NCBI GenBank assembly: GCA_021613535.1
Contig: CP075494.1
Span: forward strand, 12,524,001-12,588,000
Reading direction: 5' to 3'
DNA from: Adineta vaga
Lineage: Eukaryota; Animalia; Rotifera
Length of the DNA stretch: 64,000 bases
Every line of letters starts with the position of its first letter. Within the stretch, counting starts at the first letter, position 1. Under the pieces are notes generated by a model. The model saw only the letters and a program-made list of their open reading frames with translations. It had not been told where the DNA came from and made no database searches. This document shows, one piece after another, positions 29,560 to 47,644 of this stretch. The position numbers and the translations under genes are program-made.

Positions 29560-32178
29560 ATGGCGAACTATGGTGGTCCACGTTTCACAAGACCTTCGAT
29601 GAATGAACGTCCTGGACCTAGGTACAATTCTGTCACTTTTTCTTTATCAATTTCGATCTATATCTAATTTGTTTTTGATAGATTTAACGTACCACAAAAT
29701 CGAAATATGCCAAGACATAATTTTAATGATCATAGGTAAATTATAACTCTGTTCATTTTATTACAGTGAAGTTCATTCCCATTTTTAGACCACAACTAAA
29801 TAAATCAACTACTGGACCGCGCCCTGGGAAATCACCTAATGATACACCGATGTATGTATTGATGTTTCTCTTTCGAAATAGAAAATTCCTTTTTTTTTCG
29901 TTTAGACCGACATCTACGATTCCAAATCAAACAACAGCCAGTTCTACAGCAACGAATGTAACTGATCCAATGTAATTATCGATAATTTCTCTGACAAATC
30001 TATGTATAATCTTTCTAATTTAGTGTCGACCCGTCAAATAAACAAACAAAACCATCCATGTCAGAAGCTTCGTCGGATCAAGCAACAGCAGGATCCTTCG
30101 TAGACAATACATCAATAGCAAAAACTGATACGAAACGTTCTGATGACCAACAAGAAACTGGACAAAAACGACCGCGTATTGAAGGAAATTCTTTACAATC
30201 AACTACAACATTTGATTCTACAACATTATCATCTCAACAACAACAAAATAATGAAAAGAAGATGGCACAAGGTGGTCGCTGTCGTCTATTTATTGGTAAT
30301 ATTCCATCTGATTTAACACAAGAAGAATTTCAATTGTTATTTGGTAAATATGGTGAACTTGTCGAATATTTCGTCAATCCATCACGTGGTTTTGGTTTTG
30401 TAAAACTTGTATGTTACAAAACTATTTGAACAAGTATTATTTTACTATTCTTTTCTAGAGTTCACGTCATTTAGCTGAACGAGCCAAATATGATCTTGAT
30501 AGTTATATGTTACGTGGCAAACCACTTCGCATCCGTTTTGCAAGTCAAGGTGCTACAGTAAAAGTAAAAAATTTATCAGCAAATGTTTCAAATGAATTGC
30601 TCAAAGAAGCATTTGAACAATATTTTGGTGGTATTGAACGTGCCGTTGTCATTGTTGATGATCGAGGAAAATCGACAGGAGAAGGAATTATTGAATTTGA
30701 AAAGAAACCATCTGCACAAAAATGTCTCAATGAATGTACTGAACGTTGTTTTTTTCTTACAAGGTAATTAAAGTATGACTAACCAAACGGATGATTGTGA
30801 ATGTTAAAAAATATAGCTTTTGTCATGTAGAATAATGAATAATGAGAAATTGAATTGATTCAAACTTCTATTTCATATTTCCATTTCTGTCTAGTGAATT
30901 GAGACCGATTATTGTTGAACCATGGGATATTAGAGATGAAGAAGATGGTTTACCAGAAAAAACTTTAACTCGTAATGCAGCATTTGTGAAGTAAGTTAAA
31001 TACATTTATTTATGAATTGATTTTCTTCGAAACTTGTTTTTCATCAATTTAGAGAACGAGAAACTAAACCTCGTTTTGCTGAAATGAATAGTATTGAACA
31101 AACGATTGGTCTTAAATGGAAAGAATTAGAATTACAAGAAAAACAATTATTGGAAGAAGTAAAAAAGCGTATGCAATATGCTACTGAACAGGTGCAAGTT
31201 GAAATTGATCAAATGTATCTGGAACATCAGTCGCATGTTTTGCGAGAAGGTAAGATTAGATGACAATGAATGAGTAGAAATAATATGTATATGAAACTTT
31301 AAAATACATGATTTTGTTCAAAGATTGAAGAGATAGAAATATATTAGAAAGACAAAGAAAGATTTACATTCGAGTTGTAACAAGTTAGAATTTAACTAAG
31401 TGAACATTTTTACAGTGTGTGAGATGCAAAATATATCGTTGGAATTTTTGAAAAGACAAGCTTGTTGAGTTTGTCTCTTTACAGAAAGACTAGAAAGAAT
31501 AACAGTGGATTATAGTTTTGTTTGTGCTATACTTTCTATCAGTATTTATTCTTCATCAATCTGAGCAAAATAGAGTTGCGTTACATTTTATGGTTAAACA
31601 AATAATCTTGTTCGTTTGTACTAACTTTTTGATGCACTAACAAGCAAATACTTGTACATTACTAGTCACGATGAATATCTTTTGCGAATTTTTATGAAGT
31701 AAGTCAGAGAACATCATAATTAACCGTTTAGTTTGAGCAAATGAAGAGAGATGTAATTGAAAGAAACGGTAAGTGTCTTATGTTGTTTCTAGAGTTATTA
31801 CGTCGTCAAGAAGATCTTCGTCGAATAGACGAACTTCGATCGCAGGAAATCGATCGTCGTCGTAATGTTATGCCAATGCATCATTCAGATGCATATAATC
31901 ATCCATATAACATGTCTCCTGCTCCTATAAACAATGTATTTCATCAAAATCAAGCATCAACAAATGCAATGCAATATAACGATTTTCAACAAGGTGCCTA
32001 TCTACAAAATCCTAGTCCACTTATGCAACAAACAGCACCTGTCGGAGCACCTATTGATGCTGCATACACAACCAATCAAGTATCACGCGGTTATGTACGT
32101 CCAAGTGGAGATGATTTTCATCACCAACAGCAGCAACAACAACAACAAGGGTTTGATAGAAAACGACCGAGATATTAA
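29560..32178 (+). CDS. DBHS family RNA-binding protein (NONO/SFPQ/PSPC1/Hrp65-like), multi-exon
   Basis: RRM1 (RCRLFIGNIP...RGFGFVKL), RRM2 (VKNLSANVSNELL...RAVVIVDDRGKSTGEGIIEF), NOPS (RPIIVEP...DEEDGLPEK), coiled coil and C-terminal NLS RKRPRY. Confidence 0.93.
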
Positions 32179-35760: not shown

Positions 35761-38321
35761 ATGTCTTCGACGAATTCAACAAATTTTTTGGATTCATTTA
35801 CTAGTGTTGATGAATATAAACAGGTGAATGTCGATATTCTTTTCAAAGATTGAAAATTTTGTGTCTACATTTAGAAAATCTGTTCCAAAGTTATTGATGT
35901 TATTCGTACATCAAATCGATTAGGAATAGCAAATTTTGAAGAATTAATGAAGGTGAATTCTTGTCATGAGAAAATGAATCAATTGAGTGAACGAATATTA
36001 AAGAGGTATTCTTATTCAATCAATCTTTCTTCTAAAACTAATTCTCTTACAATCTAGAATTTCTCAAATGAAGTCTCATATTCAAACAACCAATTGGAAT
36101 CACTTAGATATCGAAGAAAAACTTGAACAATTAATTGATATTAATGATACATTATTTGAAAGAATTGTAAGAAATCTAAATTCATATATATATATATATA
36201 TATACTAATTTATTCAATATTAGGCATCTGCACTTGACGAAGCGGACGGAATAACAAAATCAACTGTATCAACAACTGTGGTAAAGATATTTACATAAAT
36301 GAAGAATGTTATTTTTAAGTAGAGTATTTTTAGCGACAAGTTCTGATCAAACCACAATTGAAATTCAAACATCAAATTAATAATAGTACAGATATACCGT
36401 TCATTCCAAAACTACGAACGAAACCAAATGCAATTACACCATTACCAGGTAAAATTTTCTTCATTATTTTTCTTTCTAAACACAGAGAATGTCTTTAGCA
36501 ATGATGATGCAAATGAATTGGGAACCAATCGATCTTGATTTATTACAAAGGCATCCTGAATTGTAAAAGTCTTTGTAATCTCAAGAACAACAAACGATTG
36601 TTTTTCTCTACTTATAGATTAGATCATCCTTATTTTGATGAAATTGAAGCATTTGAACCTGATGATATATTATTAAAACGAAATGAACCAAAAGTATGTA
36701 TCAAAAATATTTCACTATGTACTTTTAGAAATCATGTTATTTTAGTTTCCAAAATCTATGGAAGAAACAAAATGTTTATTTGTTGATACAATCGATAAAT
36801 TAAAAACAATGATGGATCATATTGAAATTCAAACAGAATTAGCAATTGATTTAGAAGTAATTCAATAGATTTTCATTCGTAATTCTATGTATTATTTTTA
36901 GCATCATTCTTATCGATCTTATCAAGGTTTTACATGTTTAATGCAAATATCGTCACGTACTGATGATTTTCTTATTGATACACTTCTTCTTCGAGATGAA
37001 TTATCTATTCTTAATAATGTCTTTACAAATCCTAAAATTTTAAAAGTAATTTTTCATCTTTTAATATTTCATTCACAGAAATATACATTTGAATTGTCAA
37101 GGTCTTTCATGGTGCTGATTGGGATATTGAATGGTTACAAAAAGATTTTGGTGTTTATGTTGTGAATATGTTCGATACACATCAAGCAGCCAAAGAACTT
37201 CAATTACCGACTTTATCACTTGCTTATCTTTTGAAAACTTTGTGTAATATTGATGCAAGTAAACAATTTCAATTAGCTGATTGGAGAATACGGTTTGTTA
37301 GAAAAAAAATAAATGGAAAAGATGATATTTTTGTTTTACTATTTAGACCTTTACCAAGTGATTATCTACGTTATGCACGAGAAGATACACATTATTTATT
37401 ATATATTTATGATCATCTACGAAATCAATTATTAGATATGAATAGACAAAATACGGAAGTTTTACGATCAGTTTATGCAAAATCAAAAATTGTTTGTCAA
37501 AAGGTAATATTAGATTTTGATCTATATTAACGTACATGCTCCAAGAAAATGAACTTTATAATTAGAATCCTACGTGATCTATCAGTTGATTTTCTGAGGA
37601 ATATTAATTGAGCTTATAATCTATGATTACAGAAATATTTTCTTAACTTTCATTGACTCTAAATATTTGCTTTTTTTGATTAGATATACAAGAAACCAAT
37701 CTTTGACAATTCTGCTTACAGAATTCTCTATGCAAAATTTCATAGAACAACTTTTGATACTCGTCAATTAACTGCTTTGAAATTACTCTATGCATGGCGT
37801 GATAAAATTGCTCGACAAGAAGATGAATCACCCAGGTATACATATATAAATCTATTCTTGACGAAATCTATAGTTAAAATACATTTTTCTTCTCAAGTTA
37901 TGTTCTATCTGATCTCATGCTAATGCATCTAGCTGAATTATTACCTAGGTAAATCATTTTTCTATTAAAGAAGTCTTTTGATTCTATGACAGTTGTTGTT
38001 TTGTTTTTTCTTGAAGAGATATTCCAGGCATTCGAGCAAGTTGTAAACTTCTTCCTGAATCAGTAGATAAAAATATCGAAGAAGTTCATCGTTTATTAAT
38101 CGAAGCAATTGAAAAACCTTCATCGGTATGTCAATTATTTCTTTTCATGTAGTTCCTATTTGAATTATTTAATCTATCTTCAGAATTTCAATGAAGAAAA
38201 TTCAGATGGTTTATTACAAACGAAACGTTCGATTTCTTCATCGGATACGAATATACCAACTGAATCACCATCATCATCAGACGATCATATTAAACGTACA
38301 AAACTTGTTCCTGAAACTTGA
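35761..38321 (+). CDS. EXOSC10: Exosome component 10 / RRP6 (PMC2NT, DEDDy exonuclease, HRDC), multi-exon
   Basis: LAIDLE|[55 protein letters not shown] and [20 protein letters not shown]. Confidence 0.92.
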
Positions 38322-40046: not shown

Positions 40047-40517
40047 ATGCGAGTCGTTAATTTAACAGAAAAACCTTCGCAAACCCGTTCTCCATCATCT
40101 GGATTTGTTGGAAATAATGATCGGCATGATTCGCAAGCGAAGATTGCTCTTCTTCAACAAAAACGAAAATCAAATATTGATATATCTACTAAACGAGTCT
40201 CATCTGTATCGAATATGGACCGACTTCCACCAAATTTATTACAAATGAAACAACAACGTTTAGTAGCAGCAGCTGATAGAAAAAAACGTCTTATTACTCG
40301 AATTATTAGTATTATTGGACTTTTAATTATACTTCTCTGTGCAGGTATTGTTGCACTTACGCTCAAAATGGCACCAAAAATAGACGAACTCGTTCGAACT
40401 AAAACAGGCGTACACCCACCAGTTCATCTTCAAACTCGAGTACCAACACTCTCATCATCAACAGCAGCAGCAGCACGCGAATCGCATAATTCATCTACAA
40501 ATAACTCTTTAAACTAG
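40047..40517 (+). CDS. Hypothetical single-pass membrane protein (156 aa)
   Basis: Basic patch RKKR followed by TM IISIIGLLIILLCAGIVALTL; acceptor ttctttAG at 40028 just upstream of the ATG. Confidence 0.65.
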   Translation: MRVVNLTEKPSQTRSPSSGFVGNNDRHDSQAKIALLQQKRKSNIDISTKRVSSVSNMDRLPPNLLQMKQQRLVAAADRKKRLITRIISIIGLLIILLCAGIVALTLKMAPKIDELVRTKTGVHPPVHLQTRVPTLSSSTAAAARESHNSSTNNSLN

Positions 40518-41711
40518 CTCAAAACTACTTTTTCTATTTTTATGAAAGATCATTGAATGAATTATAAGTTCTATTTCTGTCAATATCTATTTGATTATTG
40601 TTAATTTCTTATTGCATATGCATCAAATATTTATTGACTTTAGAAGTAACATATGTCGAATGAGATATTTTTTAATTGACTGATTTTCTCTGGTTTTTTC
40701 TCTGTGAAAAACAACGAAAATGTATTATAAATTATTGATTGTCAATAAATGTTTAGTAGCACAAGTAAACCTATTATTATCATCTATATTTATACGAAGA
40801 TTCTATTATAGATGATAGAAATGAAAAGCAATGAGAATGACTTGCTTGATGAATATGAAACTGTTCAGGTGATTAATGAAAGATACTTTTTCAATAGGCT
40901 TCGATCGATGATGAGAGATTCTTTTCTAAACAAATGAAGTTATTAATCATATTTCAAAAAAAAACTAATACTAAATATTTTGTGATCAAGTATGACGCAC
41001 AAGGATGAATTTAAGTACACATCAGCCATCAGAATGACTGACATAAGTACCGGAATATATGTCAGTTTCAATCAAATCATTTGATACAATATATTTAATA
41101 AGTTATAAAATCTAGAAAAAGTCAAGTTTATTAGCAAATAAATGAATGAATAAAGATCTCAGCTGATTTACCACTTTATTAGAATGAAAGAAAAAAATAC
41201 TTCAAAAATCATCTGATCTTCACTTTGATTCACAGTCAAAGTTTCTATTAATGTTCGTTTTCTTTAAATAATCCAATGGATGATTATAAATATTCCATTT
41301 CGAAATACAGACTAATAGCAATGCATATTTCTCATGACCGCATACACACTCTCATATACAATAATCGATTGTTTCTTTCATTTATCATATAGAAAAAATT
41401 ACAATTCATCTAGTTCTATGTACTTTTATATCACCTATGAAAACCATACTTATCCTACACATAAATATCATCGTCAACAGATCAAATGAAGTTAATTTTC
41501 TTTTTCTGAAATCATTCACCGTTTTGCTGCACATACACATCCATACACCTACAAACGTTTACATGATCTGACCGAGACGACGATCTATACTTCAACATAG
41601 AAATCGTCAACCGGGATACACAGTAAGCACACACATAGACAAATTCAATTTAAAAGACCAAGAAGAAAAAAGGAAGAAGTAAAAGAAGAAAACAAACGAA
41701 GAATAAAAAAA

Positions 41712-42720
41712 TCATGAAGTAACAAGATAGGAATACATCGGATTGTGTAGAAGATGTTGACAAAAAAGTGTTTGCATCGTTTCTGCTTTGATCGAATAAA
41801 GACTCGATAGAAAGAGTAGAAGTTTCGAATATATTGATGGCGTATTCGTCATCGATGATTGCTGACGATTTAGAGATTGTTTAAGACTGGTCAATTGTTT
41901 AACATAAAGTTCTTGTAAATGTGCATTATCATTAATTGCTAGAATAGAACAAATAATATAATGCTTTTTACTTCGAACAAGAACTCTACTTACCTTCTTG
42001 CATACTTTTAATCACAATAATTCGACGTATATGATCGAAAATATTTGAATCAATATTAAATTTCGAACCTTTTTGTAGAATTGAACATAATTTATATGCA
42101 TCCTCTTCTGGTACACATGCATATGAATGAATCGAACATGAATCTTGATTGACTGTTGTTAATAATAATGAATGCGTACAAAGAATAAATTGTAAATTAA
42201 CAAAACGTCGTTCAATAAAATATGTTAATAATAATTGTGACCAACATTGTCGATGATATGTTGATGTTGATATTGAATCTATTAAATATGTACTTGCTTG
42301 TAACCAATTCGTTATTTGTGTTTGTAATTCATCGGTTGATGATGATGGTAAATAGAGACGACGTGTACGAAAGAGATCATTTCTTTGTTTCGACATATCA
42401 CTATCGGATCTTGCATGTCGTAATGATAAATGATTTTTTTCAATTAGATTTAATTTTAATTGAACAAGTGGATTTGATTGTCGTAATAATGTACATAAAC
42501 GATTTTGTCGTGGTGAATGATGAATAGAAAACGAATGATTTTCAATATCACTTATATCATCATCACTACTTTCGAATTCATCATTAAGATTATCAGCAGA
42601 AAAGAATTTTTCTACTAGAATTGTTGGTGAATGAATCAAAATATTTTCATTATCTTCATCTTCATCACTTGAGGAATCTTTGTCATTATCATTTTCACTA
42701 GAATCATTTGTTAAATTCAT
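41712..42720 (-). CDS. Nuclear receptor ligand-binding-domain-only protein (NR0B/DAX1/SHP-like), 2 coding exons (approx. 42720-41993, 41938-41712)
   Basis: LBD-like motifs CWSQLLL (helix 5), IDSNIFDHIRRIIVIK (helix 8) and YSKLLLFLSSLYSIKAETMQTLF (helix 10/11). LxxLL (LCTLL) precedes them; no C4 zinc fingers. Confidence 0.65.
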
Positions 42721-43169
42721 CGATTTTATTGTCAAATTACCTTGAAATAAGATATATATATATACATATATTATTAACTTAATATATAGTTAAAATCATA
42801 CATACCACTTTAATACAACTGAAGTAGTTGATATTTCGTCAACATAGATTATATTCTTCAAATTGTTGCAAGATTGTCATTGGAGTATACATCTGAAAAA
42901 AATTACAAAAAAAACTATTAAGTGTAGAAGAGTTGATTTTTCTCTCTCCCTCCCTCTCTCTCTCTCATTTTGTATATCTATCAGTTTCTTCCTTATGCAT
43001 AAACACATACACGCTGTAAACAGCAACAACAGAGAAGAGCTTGGAGAAAGAAAAAAGAGAAGGACAAAATACGGCTCTCATTCGCGTTCGGCCGATGCTC
43101 ATGAATGAATGGGACTGAGAAAGAAAGAGAGAAGAGAAAGAAAGAAGGGCATATAAAAATAAGTTTTGA

Positions 43170-44617
43170 TGACCTTGAATGCTAGAAACAACGATGAAGA
43201 AAAGAACTAAATAAATGGTACACACCTCTATGTAAATGACACCGGAAAGTGTTAACCTTGGATGAATATAATCAATTCTTAATAAGAGTTTAGATATCAA
43301 ACTTGTTCCTAATATTTGATAAGCTCATATAACTTCGTATTATCTTACCAACAATTGCGTTCATATCTATCTTGAAGATCTTTTTATATGAAAAAGATCA
43401 TTCCCAATTTATGTTAGTCTGTCAGTTGTCTTTTGTTCATGTTGAAGAGAAATATCATGTGTAAATAAATCGAACTCTGTACTAACTATTCTAATACATA
43501 AATGACCTTAATCAAAATGGGTTGCATGCGCTTTAAACGAAGCGAAAACAAAAAATCTTTCTCTTCATTTCTTTCATACAAGCCTTCATGTCATTTTTGT
43601 TGTTTTCCGTTCTCTCCTTCTCTTTCTCTCTCTCTCTTCTTTTTTTCCTTCTCGGTGAAGGTGAAGTCGTGTTTTTGCTTTGCAGTTGCATATGCAAAGA
43701 CGCTTACATGACTTTATTACTTATTGATGACAAAACCTTCAAAAACATCCGTTGTTATTCTCAGTTGTGTTTTCCAATCTAAATGTACACGAATATGTTG
43801 TCTTATTTTCAGTTGATTTTTGACTGTATATATATATCTATATGTATATTCATCTAATGATAATAACACAAGAGAATTCTTATATTATGATTGTTGTTGT
43901 TGTTATCCCTATCGTGTAATGTTGTTATGTAGACCTTGGATAAGAAAAAAAGACCGAGAACAAAAATATGATGTCTTTATAGATTGAAGAACGATCGAAA
44001 AGACCTTGCACACATACAATGCCATTGAAAAGACAAGAGAAAACGTCAAGTTTATCAAGGAGAATATCAGATATATATATATTTTTTTTTTCAGGTCCTC
44101 GATTTTTTTTCTTCTTGTCTTTATTATGATGTTTGTATGAAGATGCTTGGCCTTAGATTGAAAAAAGAAAATACAAATATTTTCTCTTTAGTTGACCTAC
44201 AAAATTGAACTTGACAGAAGAAATTGTTTATCACTCAACAGATCCAATATTCTCCAGAGAATTCACTCGAAATATAAATGAGTTTGAGAAGAGGAATAAA
44301 TATATGTCTGTGTGTGTTTATATAAATCTATACAAGGTTTTTATCAGAAAAAACTTAGACCTTGAAAGATCAATAATCTCAAGTTAATATTAATATATTA
44401 TATTTTTTATGAAAAGAATAGACATCGATTTGATTGATCAATAGAATTGAAAGTCTTTTGTAATTGTTAGATTTCTTTTCCTAACTAGAAAATTTTGCTT
44501 TGATTCCTTGATTTCTGAAGGTTCTTACAAGGTTTACTCATTAGTTATCGATCAATGTGCAAGTCATGTGAAGGTTGAAGAAATCCAGAAAGATAGACAG
44601 ATAGACAGACAAGGATA
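43170..44617 (-). promoter_or_regulatory. Cluster of NR5A/ERR-type extended half-sites upstream of the NR0B-like gene
   Basis: TCAAGGTCA 43170-43178, CCAAGGTTA 43253, TTAAGGTCA 43503, CCAAGGTCT 43931, GCAAGGTCT 44001, CTAAGGCCA 44148, TCAAGGTCT 44357 (minus strand); ACAAGGTTT 44332 and 44527, ACAAGGATA 44609 (plus strand). Confidence 0.55.
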
Positions 44618-45251
44618 AACGAAAGGAAAAAAAAGAAATTCTTGCAACCTTCTCATGTTCTAATATGCAGGTTGGAAGCAATATATCTTACCAATGACAT
44701 GTCCTTTAATTGCATACTTTCTTTTGTTTATATGAGAATGTTATTAAGATTCTTTTATGATTAAAAATTCATCAGTATGTTTTAATTGACAAGTAATTGT
44801 TTTTATTATATGATGACAAATTTGAAATATTTAGAAGTGATAAGAAGCAAAAACAAGTTTTTCTAGTTATTTGATGAGATGATTTCGAAAGAAAATAGCC
44901 GATCATTGGATCTGTTTTTGCTACGTCTTAGAGATTGTTTTTCGACTTATGGATATAGAATTTCATAACAATTTTGGCCGAAAGAATGTTAAACTAGAAT
45001 TTCATCGAGAGACAAAATATTTGTTGTCTCGAAACTAAAAATGTAGAGAGTTTTCAGTGGCTATCGATTCAGTTTTCGAACATATTCTGAATAGCAGAAT
45101 TATCGTGAGAAAATCAATGAAGATATTCGATTTTCAAAGTACTATCTTACATTAATAACCTGATCGATAAGGAACAGTCTTTCTCTCAAAAATTGAAATC
45201 ATGCAATGTAAAACATTATTTTTATTAGTAAAAATTCTTTGTAATACTTTT

Positions 45252-47644
45252 TCATTTATGTAAAATCGCTTCATTAAAAGCTGGTCGATCATAATCATCC
45301 AGTGAATAAGTATGAGTTGGTGCTACTTTCTGTTTCAGTTCAAGACGACAAAAGACACATAGAATGGCTGGTGCTGCTGATGTTGCTTCACCTTCATCAC
45401 GTTTGATTTTATTCGACGAGAAATTTTTTCCACATTGATGACACTAAATTTTAAGACAAATTCCAAAATATAAAACTTTATCGTTCGTACTTACATTGAC
45501 AATTTTCAACAATTTACTATTATCCATAATTAATCTATTATCACAATTGCCAATATGCCACAATCGAATTTCACAATCCTAAAATGAGCAAAGACAGAAA
45601 AGAATGTAGATGGAATTTAAGAGATGTTTTCGTCATACACTTGATACAGATACAATCCATTTATCATCATTTGTCAAACAGACATCGTTAATCCAATCTG
45701 AATGTCCCTATTTGAAGAAAAAAAAGATATTTTCTTTTTTCAAAAGACTTTAATCTTATTCTTACACGTAGGACAATTTTATGTGTCATATTTTCTAAAT
45801 CCCATAGTACAACTCGTAAATCATATCCGCCAGTGACAAGGAGCTTTCCACTATCCGACATGTGACATGCCGCTACTGATCCTTCATGTACTTTTGGTAA
45901 TACATACGGGCCTTCACGTCTTTAAAAAAAAAGAAGAAGAAGAACAAAAAACAATATACATATCAATTGAACAGTTGACATGCTCAGCAGGTAGAAAAGA
46001 AGGAGGAGGAGGAGGAGAAGAAGATGAACATCTGAAAAGGCCATCTCATTAATTTGAACACCCACCGAGTTCGAATGAATGGCAAGAGCTAATTGTCTTG
46101 TCGCTCACCTAAAGCTACCAGTTGTAGCATCGTAAAGAAGGACATTTTTATCCCATGAACATGTTGCATATGAACGTTCAAATTTATTGAATGCACATTG
46201 TGAGACAGAACCTTCATGACCCCTTAAAAAAATGAAGAAGAAAATAGCACGTTCCTATATTTCTTATCACAAGTAAATCCATTGATGTCTACTCTACTTT
46301 AATGTAATTGTTGAACGTTGTGAAACAAGATCATAAAATTTCGTTGTTTTATCCATAGATGTAGTGATTATACGATCACCAGCAATATTAAATTGACAAC
46401 TTGTAATTGTTGATTCATGAACATTAGGTATACGAGTATTAACGAGACCATTTTCAGCATCCCATATAGTTACTAAACTATCTAAATCTGTTCCTGAACA
46501 TAATAATTTACCATCCAATGATATCTGACAATTCGTCACAATCTGTTCATGGACACCTTTCCACTAATAAATAGATAAATAAATAAACAAAGAAATGATT
46601 CAATGTTCAATAATATCAATGACAATATCATATACCCTTTCTTTGCCAGTCTCGACATCAAAACAACGAACAGTCTTATCCCAACTACATGAATATAAAC
46701 TAGAAATAAAAATTAATTCATTGATTGTTTGATAATTCAATTAGAAATCTATGAATACCGAGTTCCTTCTTGATTCATTCGTACAGATGGTATATCGGCC
46801 ATATCATGATTAAGTTTATAGAGATGAATTTGCTTTCCACTATTAAAATCCCATACACGAGCTGTATTATCATTTGACCCTGTAATAAGCCAATTTTTGT
46901 CTTCAATCAATTGACATGAATTGATTGCTCCCGTATGACCATGATATAATTTAATTTCAACCTACAATTACGTCTTTCTTTATTTCTTTCTTTATTTATA
47001 GTGTATATATATATGTGTGTTCGATTGCATAAAACTCATGTGGATGACACGTCAATGAAAAGGTGAAGAGTATCTAATTTCATTTGATAAATAGAGAAAA
47101 GAAACTAAGGAAATTCTTAATGATGATGATGATAAGAAATCTTTTGATCAAGAAGAAGAAAAAAAATCAGATCCGTTGTTCGCTCAACATAATGAGTTGA
47201 ACTCTCTTTTCTCGTGATTATCAATTGAATAATAAATGCACGGACGGATTTGTCTTTCTTGCTTTTATCAAGCCTTAGGATAGACACATCTGGGTAACAG
47301 TAACGAGAAAATCATCTATATTTTTTATTACATCATCGAAAGGTAAGCTTATGATAATAGGCATCATGTCGTGACCTGACTGTTATGTTAGAAGTCGAAA
47401 GGCGGGTGAACGTTCGTCATTGTAGCTCATCGATTCTCCTAACCAATGACACCTCCCATTGCGAGCAAGATTAATCACTAAAAACGACGGGTCAGGCGAC
47501 CGATCATATTGTTCACAAGTTATACAGTATTAATAAGAGTACTGAAAAAGAAACACCTACTTCAGCTGAACTTTCATGCACCCATTCAGCATTTGATGCC
47601 AATGGTTCGGCTAAAACATTTGTATTACGTGTTTGTAATGCCAT
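45252..47644 (-). CDS. WDR88: WD40-repeat protein, WDR88-like, with C-terminal CxxC...CxxC motif, multi-exon
   Basis: Exon 1 MALQ...WVHESSAE (47644-47561) splices to VEIKLYHGHTGAINSC. Repeated GH...WD units (GSNDNTARVWD, SWDKTVRCFD, GGYDLRVVLWD); tail CHQC...CVFC. Confidence 0.75.

Follow-up and report, generated by a model that had tools for sequence, protein, structure and literature searches.

Results

A receptor-like gene without a DNA-binding domain

The DNA studied here is a 64-kb stretch of the genome of the bdelloid rotifer Adineta vaga (positions 12524001-12588000 of contig C5; the assembly comprises 100.8 Mb in six contigs), referred to below as the window. Its minus strand carries a two-exon gene whose product is very probably a protein of the NR0B type, i.e. 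a nuclear receptor ligand-binding domain (LBD) that is not linked to a DNA-binding domain (DBD). The region upstream of this gene contains a cluster of CAAGGT sequences, several of which belong to extended half-sites resembling YCAAGGYCR and recur in related bdelloids. The coding part of the gene consists of exons 41994-42720 and 41712-41938, the first of which originates from a minus-strand open reading frame (ORF; 41986-42735) that is spliced to the second via a 55-nt intron. The resulting product of 317 aa (P0001) is identical to the annotated A. vaga hypothetical protein I4U23_025967. An earlier note on this DNA, made from the sequence alone, had described a spliced protein with an acidic N-terminus and an LCTLL box, both of which are present. 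The following parts of the gene can be distinguished (H denotes LBD helices; NR box, nuclear receptor box):

41994..42720, minus strand: coding exon 1; residues 1-242 and the first base of codon 243; acidic N-terminus, LxxLL helix and LBD helices H3-H8
41939..41993, minus strand: intron of 55 nt (GTAAGT...TCTAG), interrupting the LBD coding region; identical junction in annotated homologues
41712..41938, minus strand: coding exon 2; residues 243-317 and stop; LBD helices H9-H11 and the C-terminal tail PMYSYLVTS
42523..42720, minus strand: acidic low-complexity N-terminal region; residues 1-66; predicted disordered
42484..42498, minus strand: LxxLL NR box LCTLL; residues 75-79, inside a short predicted helix (73-82)
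41715..42360, minus strand: nuclear-receptor LBD-like domain; residues about 121-317, split by the intron; most similar to DAX-1 and the LBD of spiralian NR0B1/2

Within the LxxLL box and next to it, L75, L79 and R80 are invariant across 25 homologues, while position 78 is occupied by either L or I; the helix carrying the box is surrounded by a region predicted to be disordered. The LBD-like domain of this gene type (called type 2 below) is 60-90% identical across Adineta and Rotaria and contains many invariant residues; judging by the sequences, purifying selection on the P0001 family within bdelloids is strong. The short tail PMYSYLVTS, encoded by exon 2, lies where the canonical activation function 2 (AF-2) helix would be. 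In a joint alignment, the C-terminus (LFCQHLLHNPMYSYLVTS) pairs with LFC.HI...DMEVLLKEMLQ of spiralian NR0B proteins; it is shorter, the acidic residue is absent, and the terminal helix in the AlphaFold model presented below comprises only 4 residues.

The absence of a zinc-finger DBD, also claimed in the earlier note, held when the upstream DNA was searched for a DBD-coding exon, as far as the genome sequence allows this to be judged. None of the frames of 42700-45300, the 2.5-kb intergenic region that extends up to a WD40 gene, contains a C4 zinc-finger pattern. PF00105 matched neither P0001 nor the homologous proteins, and no match to it near the gene was present among those listed in the genome scan (the best 150 of at least 187). 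The start MNLTN is common to all 25 annotated homologues, which come from independent annotations of five bdelloid species, and a candidate exon of the 5' untranslated region (5'UTR) has an in-frame stop before the main ATG. The relatives of the gene (rotifer type-1 genes and spiralian NR0B, see below) are likewise DBD-less.

Predicted receptor fold and affinity to NR0B

The domain escapes standard models. Pfam PF00104 (Hormone_recep) gave no match at E<=10 to either exon, to P0001 or to seven homologues, and it was absent at this locus in a six-frame scan of the genome. A profile of the bdelloid-only family found no match among PDB sequences, and AlphaFold supplied with a shallow alignment of 14 bdelloid sequences produced an unusable model (predicted local distance difference test, pLDDT, 38); the prediction worked once distant relatives had been added. 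By ESM features, 28 of the 30 nearest Atlas clusters were PF00104 (best score 0.95).

In an exhaustive profile search with the C-terminal domain (1.84 billion representatives), 21 proteins passed E 1e-3. These were the bdelloid family, including Didymodactylos, a second group (P0061-P0070) and P0067. The last of these (E 4e-4) was the sole PF00104-positive match outside rotifer kin, with a Pfam LBD score of 71.6 bits. It represents a family of mollusc, annelid and nemertean proteins of 370-560 aa that contain PF00104 only, one of them named 'Dax1 [Azumapecten farreri]'. This is the spiralian NR0B1/2 family, whose NR0B status is taken from the literature (PMC13012086). When the bdelloid family was aligned with 20 spiralian NR0B sequences using hhalign, a probability of 96.9% was obtained (E 1.6e-10, 176 collinear columns); the corresponding alignment with 17 canonical A. 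vaga LBD exons was not significant (E 0.048). In the joint alignment, rotifer and spiralian proteins have motifs in common from H3 to H11.

The successful AlphaFold run covered residues 116-317 and was based on a 38-sequence alignment including spiralian NR0B. The model (pLDDT 83.1; predicted template modelling score, pTM, 0.81) has the fold of an LBD, a three-layer alpha-helical sandwich. All of its top 50 Foldseek matches were receptor LBDs, at modest E values of about 1e-3. VIA-align, a Foldseek-independent comparison with 48,161 PDB chains, ranked DAX-1 first (3f5c_C; Z 16.4, root mean square deviation 3.1 Å, 165 residues), followed by NR2E3/PNR (Z 15.1), COUP-TFII (Z 14.8) and TR4 (Z 14.1). 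In this comparison 36 receptor LBDs scored Z 10.3-16.4, while the next unrelated match reached Z 8 or less. The LBD suspected in the earlier note is borne out by a confidently predicted fold, to which Pfam is blind and for which DAX-1 is the best structural match.

The spiralian Nr0b1/2 proteins, such as scallop 'Dax1' (S4T5C6; P0092) and Platynereis nr0b1/2 (PMC13012086), likewise consist of an LBD without a DBD. Collinear motifs common to them and the rotifer protein are DWL in H3, W.(R/Q)LLL.Y..E in H5, IxKG...D..EF..LR in H7/H8, and YS+LL..L.SLY and LFC.H in H10/11; as in the rotifer, the spiralian genes have an EXOSC10 neighbour (Owenia) and upstream sites of the NR5A/ERR type. The rotifer gene differs from them in its low identity (about 20%) and invisibility to Pfam, in an H3-H4 region that is 11 residues shorter, in lacking an AF-2 helix of the DMEVLLKEML type, and in its short acidic N-terminus, which in spiralians is long and Ser/Thr-rich.

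DAX-1 (NR0B1) and SHP (NR0B2) also resemble the rotifer protein in having no DBD and an LxxLL-type box placed N-terminal to or within the LBD. Their promoters contain several SF-1/LRH-1-type sites, reminiscent of the rotifer cluster; for SHP, no fewer than five SF-1 sites have been described, as well as an autoregulatory loop formed by LRH-1 and SHP (PMC3346990). However, sequence identity to these proteins is about 13%, the 65-70-aa N-terminal repeats of DAX-1 are absent, the rotifer protein has a single NR box, and the AF-2 region is unconserved. The next-best structural matches, NR2E3/PNR, COUP-TF and TR4, differ as full receptors equipped with a DBD. No paper on a rotifer NR0B was found.

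Paralogues, phylogeny and synteny

Four NR0B-type genes are present in A. vaga: the studied type-2 gene, its ohnologue on contig C2 (58% identity), and two paralogues of 26-29% identity on contigs C4 and C1, which represent type 1:

G000:C4:3608251-3610474 (domain part 3609838-3610474): type-1 NR0B gene, DBD-less
G000:C1:8779006-8781264 (domain part 8779006-8779667): type-1 NR0B gene, DBD-less

The type-1 genes encode, as type 2 does, LBD proteins without a DBD. They are multi-exon genes with Ser/Thr-rich N-termini and VTLSKK..P..R..W motifs resembling those of spiralian NR0B; in contrast to type 2, they keep the VTL(A/S)KK..P motif and a longer C-terminus. Scallop Dax1, compared with A. vaga, matched the type-1 genes best (E 1.6e-13 and 1.3e-11), whereas the best canonical receptor was found at E 6e-6 and the studied type-2 gene at E 0.02.

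A maximum-likelihood LBD tree was built from A. vaga, bdelloid and spiralian sequences, with vertebrate DAX-1/SHP and NR2 references left out. In this tree types 1 and 2 form one clade (99/95), sister to spiralian NR0B, and the rotifer and spiralian NR0B proteins together are set apart from canonical A. vaga LBDs (100/94). Scallop Dax1 prefers the DBD-less rotifer genes over any canonical A. vaga receptor. The type-2 proteins branch from within type 1, their stem measuring 1.8 changes per site, and the studied gene can therefore be regarded as a fast-evolving duplicate. The label 'NR0B-like' given to it in the earlier note stands as far as NR0B affinity is concerned, with the refinement that the gene is a second, rapidly diverging paralogue and not the conservative rotifer NR0B. 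On the sequences compared, type 2 appears so far to be a bdelloid-only paralogue.

The studied gene has the following neighbour:

36902..37431, plus strand: part of an EXOSC10/RRP6-like gene (DNA_pol_A_exo1 domain)

At the orthologous loci of A. steineri and Rotaria, EXOSC10 is likewise found alongside, and NR0B of the annelid Owenia has an EXOSC10-like gene as its immediate upstream neighbour. The EXOSC10-NR0B pairing in bdelloids and Owenia is a possible ancient microsynteny. It is the divergent type-2 copy, not type 1, that retains the EXOSC10 neighbourhood, and the studied gene seems to sit at the ancestral NR0B locus. The same neighbourhood includes a 156-aa ORF (40047-40517, plus strand) with a transmembrane-like stretch and no Pfam family, which is found in synteny beside the NR0B-like gene in A. 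steineri and Rotaria as well (products of 156-180 aa).

Clustering of CAAGGT sites upstream of the gene

Seven exact copies of CAAGGT are present in 43172-44533 (1.36 kb), one of them within a perfect YCAAGGYCR (TCAAGGTCA), which agrees with the count in the earlier note; the span 42739-44533 (1.8 kb) contains eight, compared with about 0.5 expected. The note had estimated less than one copy by chance. When all hexamers of the upstream region were compared, in an unbiased way, with the remainder of the window, CAAGGT came out as the best non-repetitive one of 2080 (7 observed, 0.57 expected, p 2.5e-6), with AAGGTC and AAGGTT next. The whole window contains 26 copies, compared with 14.6 expected from shuffles, and in 300 Markov simulations of the window more than 5 were never seen in any 1.8-kb span. 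The density upstream of the gene, far from equalling the background level of the window, exceeds it about 15-fold. Extended forms are over-represented too: YCAAGGYC was observed 3 times (0.03 expected) and CAAGGYC 4 times (0.06 expected), while the perfect YCAAGGYCR occurs once upstream of the gene and not at all in the remaining 62 kb.

The possibility that these hexamers are splice donors was rejected, because the sequences that follow (GTCATC, GTTAAC, GTCTAC) are unlike GTRAGT. The hexamer at 42739-42744 was not counted as a binding site, since it looks like a splice acceptor junction (caag/GT) located 24 nt before the ATG. The sole other local grouping in the window comprises three CAAGGT within 500 bp (30268-30765, plus strand).

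Conservation of individual sites

Six loci were compared. The A copies are those of A. vaga, A. steineri and Rotaria sp. Silwood1, which are defined by synteny with WD40 and EXOSC10, and the ohnologous B copies are those of A. vaga, R. magnacalcarata and A. ricciae. The sites and the accompanying features are listed below (distances are from the ATG; Inr, initiator):

43170..43178, minus strand: TCAAGGTCA, perfect YCAAGGYCR / TNAAGGTCA; -458; identical in 5/6 loci, TCAAGGCCA in the A. vaga duplicate
43253..43261, minus strand: CCAAGGTTA; -540; CAAGGT core in 6/6 loci; perfect TCAAGGTCA or CCAAGGTCA in B copies
43503..43511, minus strand: TTAAGGTCA, ERR-type TNAAGGTCA; -791; kept in the A copies of Adineta and Rotaria
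43932..43940, minus strand: CCAAGGTCT; -1218; kept in 6/6 loci, TCAAGGCCT in A. ricciae
44002..44010, minus strand: GCAAGGTCT; -1288; kept in 5/6 loci, as ACAAGGTTT in three
44358..44366, minus strand: TCAAGGTCT; -1644; kept in A copies; similar TCTCAAGGTCT in B copies
44333..44338, plus strand: CAAGGT on the opposite strand (ACAAGGTTT); present elsewhere in A. steineri only
44528..44533, plus strand: opposite-strand CAAGGT (ACAAGGTTT); retained by three species in their A copies
42739..42744, minus strand: CAAGGT at a likely 5'UTR splice acceptor (tttcaag/GT), 24 nt before the ATG; probably no binding site
43112..43162, minus strand: candidate core promoter, TATA-like TTATTTTTATAT and Inr-like TCAGTC; just downstream of TCAAGGTCA; block kept in 6/6 loci
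42806..42892, minus strand: candidate 5'UTR exon (acceptor TTTCAG, donor GTATGT), proposed from sequence and conservation in six loci

Every compared locus has CAAGGT sites at corresponding distances from the ATG, and the check for conservation in related species that the earlier note had recommended shows those at -458, -540 and -1218 to be kept in 6/6. The T/C variation seen in TCAAGGCCA falls at the degenerate Y of YCAAGGYCR and fits the NR5A consensus. It is rather likely that the conserved CAAGGT-type sites would prove to be functional receptor sites.

The position of the TATA-like and Inr-like elements suggests that the putative proximal promoter lies just downstream of the -458 site. 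The candidate 5'UTR exon holds a short upstream ORF (MYTPMTILQQFEEYNLC, followed by a stop), and its donor is less clear in B copies. Rfam returned no family on 41500-45400. Other conserved non-coding blocks are found on the minus strand of 42745-44060, including CAATGGCATTG, AACAACGGATGTTTTTGAAGGTTTTGTC, CGACTTCACCTTCACC, a GATA-like AGCTTATCA and CATTCATTCATGRGCATCGRCCGA; the depth of conservation of this region, which spans Adineta and Rotaria as well as ancient ohnologues, is unusual for bdelloid intergenic DNA.

A candidate reader and sites at other NR0B genes

The FTZ-F1 box of NR5A receptors recognises the 5' YCA extension of such half-sites. By reading the best zinc-finger loci, we located a pair of NR5A/FTZ-F1 orthologues in A. 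vaga (G000:C5:6393434-6393699 and the ohnologue C2:13583104-13583372). The sequence encodes an ESCKG P-box, then an FTZ-F1 box (RGGRNKFGPLYRRSRALRQQ), and its DBD matches LRH-1 and SF-1 best among PDB entries (E 1e-35, 124 bits), with RXR and ERR next (64 bits). A shortened degenerate DNA pattern for the FTZ-F1 box had no match in the A. vaga genome, because the rotifer box reads GPLYRRSRA and not GPMYKRDRA. Downstream of the NR5A DBD on C5, at a distance of 2 kb, there is a weak match to PF00104. At the level of the whole genome, at least 187 zf-C4 matches but only 38 PF00104 matches were obtained, and divergence has probably put many rotifer LBDs out of the reach of Pfam.

Sites of the same class accompany other NR0B genes. 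Amid otherwise diverged sequence about 1 kb upstream, both type-1 ohnologues contain the island AGTTCAAGGTCGTCT, a perfect YCAAGGYCR, and they also have in common a GAGGTCAAGGTT motif resembling a direct repeat without spacer (DR0-like); conserved TCAAGGTCG and TCAAGGCCA sites are found upstream of these genes too. In the scallop Argopecten, YCAAGGYCR occurs 6 times in 25 kb (0.82 expected), with four copies placed 1.9-3.8 kb upstream of the Dax1-type ATG, and Mizuhopecten retains three of the Argopecten sites in unchanged order, orientation and spacing. Owenia has seven TNAAGGTCA sites (1.3 expected), all between EXOSC10 and NR0B. No upstream site cluster was present at the Patella NR0B locus. 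Taken together, 10 of the 12 NR0B loci have at least two strict NR5A/ERR 9-mers in the 4 kb upstream, compared with about 0.2 expected, a count in which the loci are non-independent within lineages and the patterns were chosen after the rotifer data had been seen. The NR0B locus of Mizuhopecten yessoensis contains eight more strict 9-mers outside the 4-kb upstream region, far above expectation, which might be intronic enhancers or a motif-carrying repeat.

Discussion

P0001 combines a predicted disordered acidic N-terminus and a conserved LxxLL helix with a predicted LBD in which H3-H4 is shortened and the canonical AF-2 helix is missing. By analogy with DAX-1 and SHP, its most likely action would be to occupy, by means of this helix and the LBD, the coactivator groove of receptors bound to DNA, and to repress these receptors. 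The putative promoter and upstream enhancer of the gene (about 1.9 kb) carry conserved monomeric extended half-sites, YCAAGGYC(R), and the best candidate for their reader is the NR5A/FTZ-F1 orthologue of A. vaga. NR5A would then switch the gene on and be restrained by its product, resulting in negative feedback of the kind formed by vertebrate SF-1/LRH-1 with DAX-1/SHP. Taken as a whole, this reading (an NR0B-type gene controlled through NR5A-class sites, with feedback) is the one we favour, at about an even chance. As to its parts, that NR5A reads the sites may be true or false with similar probability, and a closed NR5A-NR0B feedback loop can be put forward only tentatively. The circuit between NR5A (or ERR) and NR0B that the earlier note envisaged has gained from the conserved sites, the NR5A gene and the NR0B affinity of the protein, while binding and repression, like the transcription start site and the identity of the binding receptor, are what we infer from the genome data.

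Several observations weigh against this interpretation. Approximately 1.3 kb upstream of the gene is conserved in long blocks that contain many motifs besides CAAGGT, and conservation of the motif columns exceeds that of random hexamers in the region only marginally (permutation p 0.06). The promoter has one perfect YCAAGGYCR, most of the other sites ending with T instead of R or having T instead of C at position 8. Monomeric receptors such as ERR and GCNF/HR4 recognise similar sites, and the A. vaga genome contains more than 180 exons of zinc-finger receptors. With regard to the protein, the joint profile scores NR2E3, COUP-TF, RXR and DAX-1 within 5 bits of one another, so that the assignment to NR0B has to be based on architecture, the spiralian phylogeny in the literature, the best structural match and synteny. 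As the alignment given to AlphaFold held NR0B sequences, the model itself is possibly biased toward DAX-1. Finally, P0001 is 11 residues short in the H3-H4 signature region of spiralian NR0B and has no AF-2 helix consensus, and given these losses the partner surface of P0001 may differ.

The ambiguity of the half-sites leads to the explanation that P0001 is indeed an NR0B-type corepressor, but that its sites are read by ERR, GCNF/HR4, HR3/ROR, HR38 or a lineage-specific receptor, with no NR5A loop. This we consider rather unlikely. The site at 43503 (TTAAGGTCA) is of the ERR and not the NR5A type, the upstream sites of Owenia are all TNAAGGTCA with A or G at N, and the DR0-like GAGGTCAAGGTT of the type-1 gene is typical of GCNF; moreover, A. 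vaga has at least 187 zf-C4 matches, and the DNA immediately preceding the window contains an estrogen receptor gene. On the other hand, the best-conserved sites retain the 5' YCA extension, the tolerance of T or C at Y (TCAAGGCCA) is an NR5A signature that the ERR motif TNAAGGTCA disallows, and a clear NR5A gene with an FTZ-F1 box is present in the genome. It is also conceivable, but improbable, that the LBD-like protein is no longer an NR0B corepressor and acts, for example, as a scaffold with a new partner, in which case the motifs would be uninformative about any loop. The stem branch of 1.8 changes per site, the blindness of Pfam to the domain, the 11-residue gap in H3-H4 and the presence of PMYSYLVTS where DMEVLLKEML is expected would all agree with such a change. 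Against it stand the strong purifying selection suggested by 60-90% identity of the domain across Adineta and Rotaria, the invariance of the key leucines in the LxxLL helix, and the retention of a fold whose closest match is DAX-1.

Two further explanations concern the nature of the sites and the gene model itself. Copies of CAAGGT might be incidental to a conserved regulatory or 5'UTR block, reflecting a non-receptor factor or the remnants of internal duplications; the long conserved blocks with other motifs (CAATGGCATTG, GATA-like AGCTTATCA, CGACTTCACCTTCACC), the permutation p of only 0.06 and the hexamer that coincides with a splice junction are compatible with this. Nevertheless, the explanation is very improbable in view of the first rank of CAAGGT among 2080 hexamers (repetitive ones set aside), the parallel enrichment of the extended contexts AAGGTC and AAGGTY, which agree with a receptor half-site, the occurrence of the same 9-mer class upstream of independent NR0B genes (type 1, scallops, annelid), and the lack of any Rfam family in the region. 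The probable existence of a 5'UTR intron would leave room for a full nuclear receptor whose DBD exon, located further upstream, was missed by annotation. This is hardly credible, as neither a C4 pattern (in any frame) nor a listed PF00105 match falls in the 2.5-kb intergenic region, the MNLTN start is kept in 25 homologues annotated independently, the candidate 5'UTR exon contains an in-frame stop, and all relatives (type 1 and spiralian NR0B) are DBD-less.

The favoured reading, in which NR5A activates an NR0B-type gene that in turn restrains it, can be extended to the origin of the system. The NR5A to NR0B link may be an ancestral kernel of the bilaterian regulatory network and not a vertebrate invention, which rotifers (at both paralogues), scallops and annelids would have kept upstream of their NR0B genes. 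The bdelloid copy at the ancestral locus would then have evolved beyond the reach of standard domain models. We regard both parts of this view as somewhat doubtful, though possible.

DAX-1 and SHP were long regarded as vertebrate novelties. The spiralian NR0B1/2 proteins have been characterised only recently (PMC13012086), and P0001 is very probably a new, highly diverged form of a known family. Rotifers have two families derived from NR0B, one of them unseen by Pfam, and because of this blindness receptor inventories based on domain scans will miss type 2. Clusters of SF-1/FTZ-F1-type sites are found upstream of the NR0B genes of rotifers, scallops and an annelid, in the same arrangement as in the promoters of vertebrate DAX-1 and SHP, which suggests that the wiring from SF-1/LRH-1 to DAX-1/SHP may be ancient. 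With the conserved cluster, the NR5A gene of A. vaga and the parallel clusters of other spiralians, the hypothesis of an ancient NR5A/NR0B circuit becomes concrete and open to testing. Should NR5A indeed bind to the sites, its feedback pairing with NR0B would represent a conserved circuit of bilaterian animals.

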